Sequence record: NC_041973.1
Length of the DNA: 64,000 bases
Strand: one strand, 5' to 3'
The stretch's first letter is position 1, and each line of letters starts with the position of its first letter. Below, piece after piece: positions 8,472 through 58,409 of this stretch. The notes beneath the pieces are model-generated. The model made no database searches. It had not been told where the DNA came from and saw only the letters and a program-made list of their open reading frames with translations. Position numbers and translations under genes: made by a program.

Positions 8472-8523
8472 CGGCATATAGGCCCTCCGTAATGGAGGGC
8501 CTTTTATGACATCTTTTTTTTTT
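8472..8523. terminator. Bidirectional terminator between convergent genes
   Basis: CGGCATA-TAGGCCCTCC-GTAAT-GGAGGGCCT-TTTATGAC followed by a T10 run. Confidence 0.75.
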
Positions 8524-8534
8524 GGTTTACAGCG

Positions 8535-8981
8535 TTATACCAGGCGCTGAGTTAACTGCGAACTATATTGAATAGCGTGATAGGTCGCAGGTTTCTCAAG
8601 CTGCTCGGTGCAGCGGTAGACCGGGGTCTTCATAAAAGGGCAACCGGCATTCATTAATGCCTCACGGTTGCTGGGCGACTCATCCACGCGAATCACCACA
8701 TCCGTGGACTGGAAGCCAAAGACTTCCCGCTTCGTTGCAGTATATTCTGCATCCAGCACCACGATCTTACGGTTGATCACCAGCTTCACGGCCACCGGGT
8801 ATTTGATTACCAGGTCTGACCCTAAGCCCGCCAAGACAAACTTAATGACAAACTTCTTAAGTCCATTTAGCAACTGACTCTCACTGGCCCAACTTTTAAC
8901 AATCTGCAGCATGTGTGTATTTCCACTCATATAAGGGGAAGTTAAGAAAAGCAACCTGAGGGCCCGTCCGTGATCCCTCAT
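8535..8981 (-). CDS. Hypothetical protein (start uncertain)
   Basis: Follows the 8988 ORF after a 7-nt gap and ends at the bidirectional terminator. Confidence 0.5.
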   Translation of the reverse strand: MRDHGRALRLLFLTSPYMSGNTHMLQIVKSWASESQLLNGLKKFVIKFVLAGLGSDLVIKYPVAVKLVINRKIVVLDAEYTATKREVFGFQSTDVVIRVDESPSNREALMNAGCPFMKTPVYRCTEQLEKPATYHAIQYSSQLTQRLV

Positions 8982-8987
8982 AATGTA

Positions 8988-9452
8988 TTACTTCATACCG
9001 TCCAACTGCTTTTGAAGTTCCTTTAACTGACGGCTTGCATCCGGCGTCTCGGCGTCATGATCTCTGATCGCTTCAATAAACGACTTCCGTTTGCAATAAG
9101 GATACTTCATCCATTTATCAAATGACAAACCAAATTTGCCCAAGATATCCGCACGCAGATATTCGAGCTCATACTTTCGATACCCAACTAACGCCAGCGA
9201 GTCTTCCTGCTCGACCTGTAAGATTAACGAGAGCGGCGAGGTTTCCACGTTATGGTCAATAATCCCAAACGTGTCATCGTAAAGCTCTGTTAATCGAATT
9301 AGTGGATACTCCCAGTTCTCGGTAAGAAACGTGGGGTTTTCTAACGCGACATCCCAGGCATCGGACCGATCACTTTCGGACAGACCGAAATCCCAATGGA
9401 TTAGATGTCGGCTTGATCGAACGTCTGATTCAGTGTATTCGTCATTAGGGTA
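8988..9452 (-). CDS. Tail/baseplate assembly chaperone C-terminal (T-like) ORF, probably reached by -1 frameshift from the upstream gene
   Basis: ILGKFGLSFDKWMKYP resembles the short C-terminal domain of tail-assembly chaperone fusions; no start codon with an RBS after the upstream stop; T8 run at the overlap. Confidence 0.6.
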   Translation of the reverse strand, partial: YPNDEYTESDVRSSRHLIHWDFGLSESDRSDAWDVALENPTFLTENWEYPLIRLTELYDDTFGIIDHNVETSPLSLILQVEQEDSLALVGYRKYELEYLRADILGKFGLSFDKWMKYPYCKRKSFIEAIRDHDAETPDASRQLKELQKQLDGMK

Positions 9453-11020
9453 AAAAAAACCCGTGCTACGTTCAGCGGGGTGTATGCCGGGAAGGTGTTG
9501 CTCACCAGCGGTTGACGCGCCTGGCAGTTCGGGCATTTCCAACGCGGTACTGCGACCACACCGACCGTTACCCGGTTGATGAACTTGTTCAGCTCTTCAA
9601 AGAACGGTTTACGCATATCCGGGGTTGCACTGAATTGCTTCAGCAGCAAGGCCACGTCATCGGCCGACTCAACATAGTTGCCATCGTTGAACTCGATCTT
9701 GGTCACCCAGTGGGCGTAACCACGCATGGAGGACAGCGCTGCCTGTTTGTTGATGTGTTGCTCACGCTGCTCACGCGTCATGCTGTCGTTGAAGCTGTCG
9801 GTGATCGCTTGTTGAATGCCGTTGATCCAGGCATAACCCGCTGCATTCTTATCTTCGAGTGATGGCACCCGCAGATAGAACTTCACATCTTTCACAGTGA
9901 TGACATTGTCTTTCATCACTTCAAAGCCGGTCTGATAGGCAACGACCTGCTCGACGGTACGGCCGCTGAAGTGAGACATGTGCGCACGCTGGGTTGGTGA
10001 CAGACGATTGTTGTCAATGATCGACAGACGAGAGACGTTAACTTTCGCTGCTTCAACATGCACACACTTCTTCGGATCGGCGGCACAGGCAGTGACCATG
10101 TGGTAGCCAGACTTAAAGCGTGCGCCCAGGTAGGCGTTAGCGATCAGATCGAGATCCTGCTCTTTGATTAACGGCAGCAGGGTTTTCTTATCGGAGACGC
10201 CGATGCTGCTGTCAGTGACCATACCCAGCAGGAAGTCAGTCATGTGCTTACGCACCACGACATCCAGGTTGTTAAACACCAGACCGTTGGTACGACGACC
10301 GAGGATCGCTTTCTCAGCCATGATGGCGGTTTGCATATCCACAAACTCATCATCACCGGCAATCAGCAACGTAACCCAGATACCAGAATGTGGCAGCGGC
10401 AGATGGACATAGTCACCCATGTTCATCACGCCACGAGCACGCATCACTGCCTGTGGACCGGTCAGCAGTTTAGTGCCTTCGGTACTGCGCTTCACTGGCG
10501 GGCGAGAAACACCCTGCACTTTGTTATTGTCGAGCAGAATACCCTGCAGCCACTGCGCACCATCTTGACGAATGGTCAGGTTCAGACCAGAACGGTACGA
10601 CAGGTTGGTGATGGCGTTACTGGCCAGGGATAGCCAGATCATCGCTTTATCAGCACCGTACAGACTGACGATCTCTTTTAAGATCTTCTTGTCTTCGGTG
10701 TTGGTGTCGATCTCGTTGATCAGCGCCGTCGCTGCATCGTAATCCTGATGCATGATAGACAGCACACCTTCCGTGCCGACATCCTCCATGGAGTTCAGCT
10801 TTTCAATGATCGGGTTCTGATAGAGCGGATCGAACGCCTGCTCAACGGCTTCAACTTCAGGTGCTTCAGCTTCGCCCTGTTGGCTGGTTTCTGCTGGCTC
10901 GGGATCGGTGCCAATAGTACCAGTAGTCGCCGGACGGCCTGGATCAACTTCAGGAATACCAGAGTGGTTTTCTTCAACAGGATCTTGCTGTGACAGAATG
11001 GATGGGTTATCACCGGACAT
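9401..11020 (-). CDS. Tail/baseplate-hub assembly chaperone-like protein (T4 gp26/gp51-like; phiKZ gp77 position)
   Basis: CxxxxxxC and CPNC cysteine pairs, FxLRVPSL segment, acidic N-terminal linker; synteny upstream of the vRNAP beta' subunit. Confidence 0.55.
   Translation of the reverse strand: MSGDNPSILSQQDPVEENHSGIPEVDPGRPATTGTIGTDPEPAETSQQGEAEAPEVEAVEQAFDPLYQNPIIEKLNSMEDVGTEGVLSIMHQDYDAATALINEIDTNTEDKKILKEIVSLYGADKAMIWLSLASNAITNLSYRSGLNLTIRQDGAQWLQGILLDNNKVQGVSRPPVKRSTEGTKLLTGPQAVMRARGVMNMGDYVHLPLPHSGIWVTLLIAGDDEFVDMQTAIMAEKAILGRRTNGLVFNNLDVVVRKHMTDFLLGMVTDSSIGVSDKKTLLPLIKEQDLDLIANAYLGARFKSGYHMVTACAADPKKCVHVEAAKVNVSRLSIIDNNRLSPTQRAHMSHFSGRTVEQVVAYQTGFEVMKDNVITVKDVKFYLRVPSLEDKNAAGYAWINGIQQAITDSFNDSMTREQREQHINKQAALSSMRGYAHWVTKIEFNDGNYVESADDVALLLKQFSATPDMRKPFFEELNKFINRVTVGVVAVPRWKCPNCQARQPLVSNTFPAYTPLNVARVFFTLMTNTLNQTFDQADI
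9452..9460 (-). promoter_or_regulatory. Slippery site G-TTT-TTT-TT (T8) for -1 frameshifting
   Basis: 0 frame CGG GTT TTT TTT ACC; -1 frame GGT TTT TTT TAC is open for 154 further codons. Confidence 0.6.
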
Positions 11021-11037
11021 TATGCTTATCCTTACCT

Positions 11038-11505
11038 TTACTTTTTAGTGGGGTCGACCTGAACCGGGTCATTGAGTTTGCTTGCTGCGCCAGCGGCAAC
11101 CGCGTTAGCATGGGCACTGTCTGACATGGTCAGAATGGCAGCACCGTGACGCTGCATCGCATCCAGCAATTTACTCTGCAGGACGATGTATTGTTCGTGC
11201 ACACTGAGGAAGTCAGCGATGGTGCTGTCATGCAAGGCATAACCGGTTTTGCCTTGATGCTGCTGCTTGATCATCGGCAGTGTTTCATCGATCTCTTTGA
11301 CTACAGCCAGCGCCGCTTCGATGTGCGAGCTTAACGCAGAGGGGTTTGGCTGAAAGCGAATGATGTTGGTGTTGACGGCCATGAGACAAGTATTGCTCAG
11401 CTCATTGCGCAAATTAATCGTATAAGTTGCCGCAGAATCCAGGTACTCCCAGAACTGATCGGGCTGATGGACCTCTGGTGCGAGAGGCGGTTCATTGGTT
11501 GACAT
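11038..11505 (-). CDS. Conserved hypothetical protein (phiKZ gp78 position)
   Basis: AAGGA RBS; co-oriented with the chaperone genes. Confidence 0.6.
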   Translation of the reverse strand: MSTNEPPLAPEVHQPDQFWEYLDSAATYTINLRNELSNTCLMAVNTNIIRFQPNPSALSSHIEAALAVVKEIDETLPMIKQQHQGKTGYALHDSTIADFLSVHEQYIVLQSKLLDAMQRHGAAILTMSDSAHANAVAAGAASKLNDPVQVDPTKK

Positions 11506-20602: not shown

Positions 20603-20653
20603 GCATAAGGAGAGGCCTCGCGCCTCTCCTGTTTATGCCGTCTTTTTTTTTTT
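20603..20653. terminator. Bidirectional hairpin GCATAA...TTATGCCG plus T-run
   Basis: GGAGAGGC-CTCGC-GCCTCTCC between convergent genes. Confidence 0.8.
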
Positions 20654-58183: not shown

Positions 58184-58251
58184 CGGCATAACCCCCTGAG
58201 AGAGAAGCGCAATGCTTCTCTCTCAGGGATGCCTGAATCTCTTTTTTTTTT
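58184..58251 (+). terminator. Long hairpin element with GGCAT...ATGCC closure and T10 run
   Basis: CCCTGAGAGAGAAGC-GCAAT-GCTTCTCTCTCAGGG. Confidence 0.8.
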
Positions 58252-58371: not shown

Positions 58372-58409
58372 AAAAAAAAGGAGGAAGCAGCTTATCCAGT
58401 TACTTCCTC
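58372..58409 (-). terminator. Intrinsic terminator of the dnaB-like gene
   Basis: Minus strand GAGGAAGTA...TGCTTCCTC followed by T8. Confidence 0.75.

Follow-up and report, generated by a model that had tools for sequence, protein, structure and literature searches.

The DNA analysed here (the window, 64,000 nt from sequence record NC_041973.1) carries on its minus strand a gene, gp267 in Erwinia phage vB_EamM_RAY, that appears to be decoded in two ways. Near the 3' end of its 539-aa open reading frame (ORF1) lies a run of eight T residues, at which reading very probably slips back by one base and continues in an overlapping frame (ORF2, the extension), so that a form of about 677 aa would be made besides the 539-aa form. 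Comparison of related sequences lends good support to a conserved, programmed -1 recoding event at this T-run in the family of phiKZ gp77, to which gp267 belongs. The more specific reading, that gp267 is an early, non-virion core gene decoded two ways by means of programmed -1 ribosomal frameshifting, is assigned a probability of about 0.6. Directly observed are the site, its codon phase and how well both are conserved, as well as the coding signature that the extension bears and the absence of a start for it. The 2.2-kb region around the gene is identical (100%) to that of RAY and 97–99% identical to 15 sister records; RAY is a member of Agricanvirus, and is a phiKZ-like, nucleus-forming jumbo phage. 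The parts of the locus are as follows.

9401–11020, minus strand: ORF1, annotated as RAY gp267; 539 aa, the 0-frame product; matches phrog_4585 and phrog_8054.
9452–9458, minus strand: slippery heptamer T_TTT_TTT in the phase of ORF1, covering the Phe codons F522 and F523.
9452–9459, minus strand: the full T8 run, with a G at 9460.
9401–9451, minus strand: 0-frame tail of 16 codons and a stop, the C-terminus of the short isoform; it overlaps the beginning of the extension (dual coding).
8988–9452, minus strand: -1 extension (ORF2), 154 codons and a stop (8990–8988), accessible only by way of the shift and predicted to be mostly helical; its family matches are phrog_13274, phrog_12109, phrog_7580 and phrog_34704, each of unlisted function in PHROGs.
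8988–9536, minus strand: annotated gp266, the -1 frame read from an ATG at 9536 that is internal to gp267.
9453–9536, minus strand: 5' part of gp266, a -1 reading inside ORF1 and upstream of the slip site.

In the frame of gp267 the codons at the site are CGG GTT TTT TTT ACC, and after the second TTT frame 0 runs through 16 sense codons to a stop. A shift at this point joins 523 residues to 154, giving a predicted product of about 677 aa, compared with 539 aa for the unshifted one. The site stands out within the window: only one of the 42 in-phase heptamers in long ORFs is followed by a -1 frame that continues for at least 50 codons beyond the 0-frame stop, and this is the gp267 site (137 codons). 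The T8 run is also the sole homopolymer of at least 7 bases inside a long ORF. The original prediction, made from the letters of the window, had described the 539-aa minus-strand ORF and its in-phase T-run heptamer, and T_TTT_TTT does occupy 9458–9452; its statement that the -1 frame stays open for 154 codons was likewise accurate, the stop being at 8990–8988 and the product of about 677 aa following from it. Some details needed correction. The T8 run is present but had been given as 9452–9460, one base too long. An upstream ATG that lacks a good Shine-Dalgarno (SD) sequence exists, but at 9536, as the position originally assigned to it, 9542, is a TTG; nor is it the only ATG in the frame, since two more occur late in ORF2, at 9110 (codon 115) and 8996.

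ORF1 and ORF2 were searched separately. Relatives of ORF1 were found in 221 phage records, including phages of Pseudomonas, Erwinia, Salmonella, Serratia, Ralstonia, Vibrio, Klebsiella, Burkholderia and others, and extend to a Bacillus phage and to Halocynthia phage JM-2012. For a survey of the site, 88 loci were collected from GenBank phages and IMG/VR with four sub-family alignments as queries, among which 66 differ from one another in the region of the site; since the loci are phylogenetically related, the counts that follow do not represent independent events. All 66 have the site at the same aligned position and show the same -1 relation between the two frames, at ORF1 identities that go down to about 20%. 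A canonical in-phase T_TTT_TTN is present in 55 (37 end in TTT, 15 in TTC, two in TTG and one in TTA), while in the other 11 the site aligns at the same place but is weakened at the P-site base or the first codon, with T5–T6 runs (nine A/G_TTT_TTY, two N_CTT_TTT). Overall, the run is T5 in three loci, T6 in 12, T7 in 37 and T8 in 14. The site is followed by a -1 ORF of 135–184 codons in all 65 loci of complete sequence except that of Pseudomonas phage RVTF4, where the extension ORF of the deposited sequence is broken once by a change of frame, both pieces still being homologous. The RVTF4 break could be either a sequencing error or real decay.

Among the nearer relatives, AH06, SA002, pEa_SNUABM_37 and Proteus phage 10 (ORF1 about 40–76% identical) have kept every feature: the T-run in its codon phase, the 0-frame tail of 16 codons, and a -1 ORF that is homologous and startless. 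These features recur at about 20–25% identity in phiKZ/PA7 (gp77 and an 80-aa 'PHIKZ076.4'), SPN3US, RP12 and Bacillus phage AgentSmith. Alignment of the gp77 homologues, in which the original prediction had expected a conserved slippery site and a startless -1 ORF, thus finds both, and the proposed programmed -1 shift that fuses the two ORFs has gained strong comparative evidence.

The place of the shift can be narrowly bounded. The -1 frame opens as little as one codon before the site (in relatives it is closed 1–50 codons upstream) and frame 0 closes as little as eight codons after it across the 66 loci, so that a shift, if homologous in all of them, must occur at or beside the heptamer. 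In the +1 frame a stop follows after anything from a few to about 100 codons, and no conserved extension is seen. Codon usage also shows that selection acts on the nucleotides themselves, as the site retains TTT TTT in genes with a preference for TTC elsewhere: TTT makes up only 2/18 Phe codons in RP12, 1/21 in RVTF4, 2/13 in FLC9 and 3/17 in SNUABM37.

The extension has no recognisable start of its own. In RAY the first 68 post-site codons of the -1 frame are free of ATG, GTG and TTG, which bears out the description of ORF2 as startless in the original prediction; the first start-type codon thereafter is a GTG without SD, the first ATG is codon 115, and none lies near the ORF1 stop. Neither of the upstream candidates, ATG 9536 and TTG 9542, has an SD, and in relatives they are either missing or blocked by stops, ATG 9536 being absent in AH06, SA002 and others; no conserved start for ORF2 was found among relatives. 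The 5' part of gp266 (9453–9536) is probably not translated as annotated, because it has no SD, its ATG is unconserved and the upstream -1 frame is closed in relatives. Nevertheless, the extension bears the marks of a translated sequence. In the stretch between the ORF1 stop and the first ATG, pairwise substitutions concentrate at position 3 of the -1 frame, and many are synonymous: at positions 1/2/3 they number 12/13/37 between RAY and AH06, and the corresponding figures are 17/10/49 for SA002 against an IMG/VR relative and 23/13/57 for SNUABM37 against that same relative. Such a third-position bias within a startless stretch argues that the extension is translated.

In the 17-codon overlap, substitutions avoid position 2 of frame 0, and the nucleotide divergence between RAY and AH06 is 3/51, compared to 62/309 just downstream. 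This low divergence fits a constrained 0-frame tail combined with dual coding. The tail, 'FFTL...', is conserved family-wide and is modelled as a helix, at low confidence. The strong conservation of about 50 nt after the heptamer (seen between RAY and AH06, with the region aligned in other relatives) is explained by dual coding, and the sequence data leave room for a short-range RNA signal that may also reside in the region 9401–9452.

Over its C-terminal 110 or so residues the extension can be aligned in 25 lineages; it does not repeat any domain of ORF1 (hhalign probability 0.1%). A HMMER search with ORF2 against 1.84 billion representative proteins returned 13 matches, all of them fragments of 72–186 aa. 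None was an in-frame fusion, which would be about 700 aa long, so that no sampled lineage has done without the shift. No record annotates a slippage, and the region has been given 0–3 small ORFs of 45–180 aa; even the 47 near-identical phiKZ-like records have variously 0, 1, 2 or 3 small ORFs there, some on the wrong strand. The full-text literature searched, which does not cover every journal, contained no mention of a frameshift in a gp77-family gene, and the original remark that none had been described for phiKZ-like phages holds to that extent; the name gp77 is mostly used there for unrelated, equally numbered proteins of other phages.

RAY gp267 corresponds to phiKZ gp077, Goslar gp081 and the Chimalliviridae core gene cg18, which is listed as 'hypothetical protein' (10.1101/2023.02.24.529968). 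Its identification as a homologue of phiKZ gp77, already made in the original prediction, is upheld by tblastn and alignment, and its place near the gene of a virion RNA polymerase (RNAP) subunit is conserved. Phage Churi is 99% identical to phiKZ in this region, and its ORF1 homologue, gp256, is a non-virion protein; two mass spectrometry (MS) experiments detected it at 15 min after infection (PMC11849849). The protein is not mentioned in the phiKZ structural atlas (PMC13250141) or in the Goslar structure preprint. Detection at 15 min and the silence of the structural papers together point to an early, non-structural protein.

ORF1 is 476–720 aa long in relatives. Its N-terminus is acidic and variable, and probably disordered, whereas the core is conserved and contains the motif 'PLPHSGIW'. 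Four cysteines (C312, C319, C496 and C499) could plausibly bind zinc, as the original prediction of a zinc finger implies. However, the second pair, a CxxC just upstream of the slip site, occurs in most of the family but is missing from the RP12 (Ralstonia) and FLC9 (Burkholderia) relatives, so any zinc site is not universal. Sequence and profile searches with ORF1, ORF2 and the family alignments gave no named family in Pfam, NCBIfam, PHROGs or PDB; two PDB matches to the designed repeat protein 'Tako8' contained no passing stretch and were dismissed as compositional. The AlphaFold2 models have mean confidence scores (predicted local distance difference test, pLDDT) of 46 for ORF1 (14-sequence alignment) and 54 for ORF2 (11 sequences), which is too poor to use, and a Foldseek comparison of these two low-pLDDT models with PDB yielded nothing with an E value below 1.

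If the shift is made by the ribosome, most ribosomes would read through the T-run and stop 16 codons further on, giving the 539-aa protein that ends in the conserved 'FFTL...' segment. A fraction of them, with two Phe-tRNAs on UUU UUU, would slip back one base on U_UUU_UUU and carry on in the -1 frame over a further 154 codons. The resulting long isoform, of about 677 aa, would share residues 1–523 with the short one and have the short tail exchanged for a helical domain of about 150 aa. Presumably both isoforms would be needed in a set ratio, and the extension might, as a guess, be a partner-binding or oligomerisation module carried by a sub-population of the protein. We infer that the slip is ribosomal and needs no strong RNA stimulator; a stimulator is not obligatory for -1 frameshift sites, and several phage sites work without one. 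Because no conserved stimulator was found, the efficiency would be expected to be modest and constitutive, like that of other unstimulated phage sites. A bolder version, which we consider improbable, makes the shift an obligatory, family-wide device in which the ribosome sets the ratio of short to long form, the long isoform is essential in nucleus-based replication, and the stimulator-free site works on ribosomes from Pseudomonas to Bacillus. Within that version the ratio may be tuned during infection by ribosome-binding phage factors or by the separation of nuclear transcription from translation.

Several observations weigh against a ribosomal frameshift. The strict X_XXY_YYZ rule is violated at the P-site position in 11 of the 66 loci, and conservation of 'FF' at the protein level explains part of the T-richness. 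Neither a conserved downstream hairpin at the expected spacing of 5–9 nt nor an upstream SD-like stimulator was found. For the 90 nt downstream, most minimum free energy z-scores fall in the range from -1.8 to +0.6, with nothing remarkable in 19 of the 21 lineages, and the RNAalifold consensus hairpin of the RAY clade (-6 kcal/mol, about 39 nt downstream) shows no covariation and coincides with a conserved protein motif. MS of infected cells revealed the gp77 homologue and not the 45-aa annotated stub of the extension, a result that is uninformative given that the published search database contained only that stub of it (PMC11849849). Lastly, insertion of one base by a polymerase on the same run gives an identical protein, so that sequence comparison cannot fully separate the two mechanisms. 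Transcriptional slippage, in which the phage RNAP, or its reiterative copying of the dA template run, adds one U within the U7–U8 run of a fraction of the transcripts and the protein of about 677 aa is made by standard translation, had been named as an alternative in the original prediction and stays a live one, although we regard it as unlikely. It is favoured by the pure T7–T8 homopolymer of 51 of the 66 loci, by rU:dA hybrids being the classic slippage-prone case, by the failure to find an RNA stimulator for ribosomal frameshifting, and by the fact that these phages use their own unusual multisubunit RNAPs; since the product is identical, no protein-level argument speaks against it. The run itself fits it less well. 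At 15 of the 66 loci it is only T5–T6, shorter than the runs that give useful slippage with characterised polymerases (about 8–9 or more A/T for the bacterial ones). Moreover, the codon phase is fixed, 55 loci having the exact X_XXY_YYZ form, including T_TTT_TTC, whereas a polymerase would not require any phase. Even minimal T6 runs keep it, four of the 12 having exactly this T_TTT_TTC, although the conserved Phe-Phe accounts for part of the kept phase. The retention of phase in these loci and the short runs make ribosomal slippage the more likely of the two.

Other explanations dispense with the shift altogether. ORF2 could be a separate gene, translated from an internal or non-canonical start or by termination-reinitiation, with no fusion protein being made. 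This agrees with all deposited annotations, which treat the ORFs as separate genes, and in RP12 (ORF254), BONAISHI, Yong MS32, FBKp24 and Moabite (annotated ribosome-binding site) the annotators have used an ATG that occurs soon after the ORF1 stop. In RAY, however, there is no start-type codon for 68 post-site codons and none near the ORF1 stop, and yet the stretch is conserved and has a coding signature. The annotated starts also differ wildly between close relatives, phiKZ-like records having 0–3 small ORFs of 45–80 aa, and independent initiation does not explain why the -1 frame is open from the heptamer onwards in every locus and the heptamer conserved. The startless coding stretch and the conserved heptamer have led us to reject independent initiation, which is very improbable. 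An artefact or decay, by which a homopolymer error or a recent frameshift split one ordinary gene of about 690 aa, is exceedingly improbable. Homopolymers are error-prone in sequencing, and the RVTF4 deposit has the extension broken once more, but the frame relation is the same in 66 distinct sequences from independent projects, with runs of T5, T6, T7 and T8. Near relatives differ between T7 (GCT TTT TTT) and T8 (GTT TTT TTT) by a substitution in the preceding codon, not by the length of the run; the 0-frame tail beyond the site is conserved and under 0-frame constraint, and the 1.84 billion representative proteins include no fused in-frame version. Sequencing error and pseudogene formation are rejected.

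A different question is what the pair of ORFs does. The original prediction regarded it as the jumbo-phage equivalent of the G/GT tail-assembly chaperones, a proposal that is not supported by the present results and is very doubtful. The architecture is similar, a -1 heptamer lying close to the 3' end and the ORF that follows having no start; the protein is not a virion component, as is likewise true of chaperones, and in three GenBank records the ORF1 homologue goes under the name 'baseplate protein' or 'putative baseplate hub assembly protein'. In contrast, sequence and profile searches with both ORFs recovered no chaperone or baseplate family and no PDB entry, and the PHROG families concerned are of 'unknown function'. 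With its 539 aa, ORF1 is some four times as large as a G protein, and only the extension (about 150 aa) is comparable. No tail or tape-measure gene is adjacent, as the original prediction had itself remarked for the tape-measure gene; the neighbours are instead the virion-RNAP gene gp270 and hypothetical genes. The Churi homologue is present at 15 min, i.e. early and not during late morphogenesis (PMC11849849), and the protein goes unmentioned both in the phiKZ structural atlas (PMC13250141) and in the Goslar structure paper. Except for the frameshift architecture itself, none of the membership features testable here places the pair among the tail-assembly chaperones, and as far as these tests tell gp267 is not one. 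The baseplate labels met with in this neighbourhood, in three records, are 'baseplate hub protein' for Churi_gp258 (a 47-aa ORF, survey locus L035, 3014–3157), 'baseplate protein' for AH06_284 (L002, 5680–7323) and 'putative baseplate hub assembly protein' for AGENTSMITH_11 (L008, 2081–3784); they look like annotation carry-over, as no family or structure search supports them.

Recoding of a known kind is thus met with in a new protein family. By architecture the nearest analogue would be the capsid gene 10 of phages T7 and T3 (10A/10B), where a -1 shift near the 3' end produces a minor, C-terminally extended isoform. In both systems slippage takes place only a few codons ahead of the normal end of a complete, functional protein and involves Phe codons, the isoforms share nearly the whole sequence, and the extension ORF is startless. 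The T7/T3 product is a capsid protein, however, whereas here it is an early non-virion protein of another family, the gp77-family extension is much longer (154 aa) and forms a conserved domain family itself, and the gp77-type site is conserved over a whole virus family with hosts from Pseudomonadota to Bacillus. In evolutionary behaviour the system would most resemble lambda G/GT: in both, the upstream ORF has towards its end a heptamer of the X_XXY_YYZ type with a conserved -1 shift, the downstream ORF is startless, the arrangement is kept while the sequences diverge, and no strong stimulator seems to be needed. They are nevertheless without homology. ORF1 of gp267 has 539 aa as opposed to about 140 aa, and gp267 is expressed early, does not lie between tail-tube and tape-measure genes and is not known to act in tail assembly. 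For the frameshift of the G/GT type, PMC10885494 cites Xu, Hendrix and Duda (2004). The mechanistic ambiguity would be closest to that of dnaX (tau/gamma) and of orfA-orfB in insertion sequences (IS), where two products in a set ratio likewise arise from a -1 event on a homopolymer-rich heptamer. Some bacteria obtain the same dnaX or IS outcome by polymerase slippage on an A/T run, and the choice between ribosome and polymerase is the same as at the gp77-family site. Unlike the gp77-family event, which extends the protein, the dnaX frameshift truncates it, and the stimulators of the dnaX and IS sites are clearly defined (an SD-like element upstream, a hairpin downstream), whereas none was found here.

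If this interpretation is correct, every Chimalliviridae genome encodes one further conserved protein, the long isoform (about 680 aa) of cg18 (phiKZ gp77). The short 'hypothetical proteins' that over 200 GenBank records show downstream (e.g. PHIKZ076.4, RAY gp266 and SPN3US gp226) would then be fragments of it, often with wrong starts, and proteomic searches and structure predictions that rely on the annotations as they stand would overlook the extension domain or cut it short. It would also provide a handle on a core gene of the nucleus-forming phages, with two isoforms to be sought in proteomic, localisation and structural data, and would add a deeply conserved, apparently unstimulated U-run recoding site, which serves in hosts that differ widely, to the few phage frameshifts outside tail-chaperone genes.

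The gene immediately upstream of gp267 is the following.

11038–11505, minus strand: gp268, 155 aa; directly upstream of gp267 and co-oriented with it; counterpart of phiKZ gp78.

The RAY neighbours of gp267 are gp268, gp269, the virion-RNAP subunit gene gp270 and small hypothetical genes. They belong to a conserved block consisting of the small upstream gene (RAY gp268, phiKZ gp78) together with divergently oriented genes for a head protein and a virion-RNAP subunit, and synteny is the same in phiKZ, where gp78–gp80 flank gp77. A gene of the gp268 type is found directly upstream and co-oriented in nearly all surveyed lineages, its stop often overlapping or abutting the start of ORF1, and CR5 has no separate small gene at this place. 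The Churi homologue, gp255 (survey locus L035, 395–889), is a non-virion protein with 52% MS coverage 15 min after infection (PMC11849849). gp268 gave no family match. It probably shares the early transcription unit of gp267 and may be a functional partner of it.

On the other side of gp267, the extension is followed by an ORF at 8535–8981 (minus strand) that could begin at ATG 8981, only 7 nt past the extension stop, and would then encode 148 aa; the RAY annotation and a PHROG profile covering residues 24–148 favour a later start, which gives 125 aa. A scan of the window for promoters and terminators produced background levels only. The remaining homopolymers of at least 7 bases in the window are all intergenic: three T10–T11 runs on the plus strand (8514–8523, 20643–20653 and 58242–58251) and one A8 (58372–58379). 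The three T-runs have a similar preceding context (...TC, then the T-run), lie just 3' of plus-strand ORFs and may be terminator or promoter signals of the phage. The A8 lies where an ORF begins, with an SD-like motif on either side of it.

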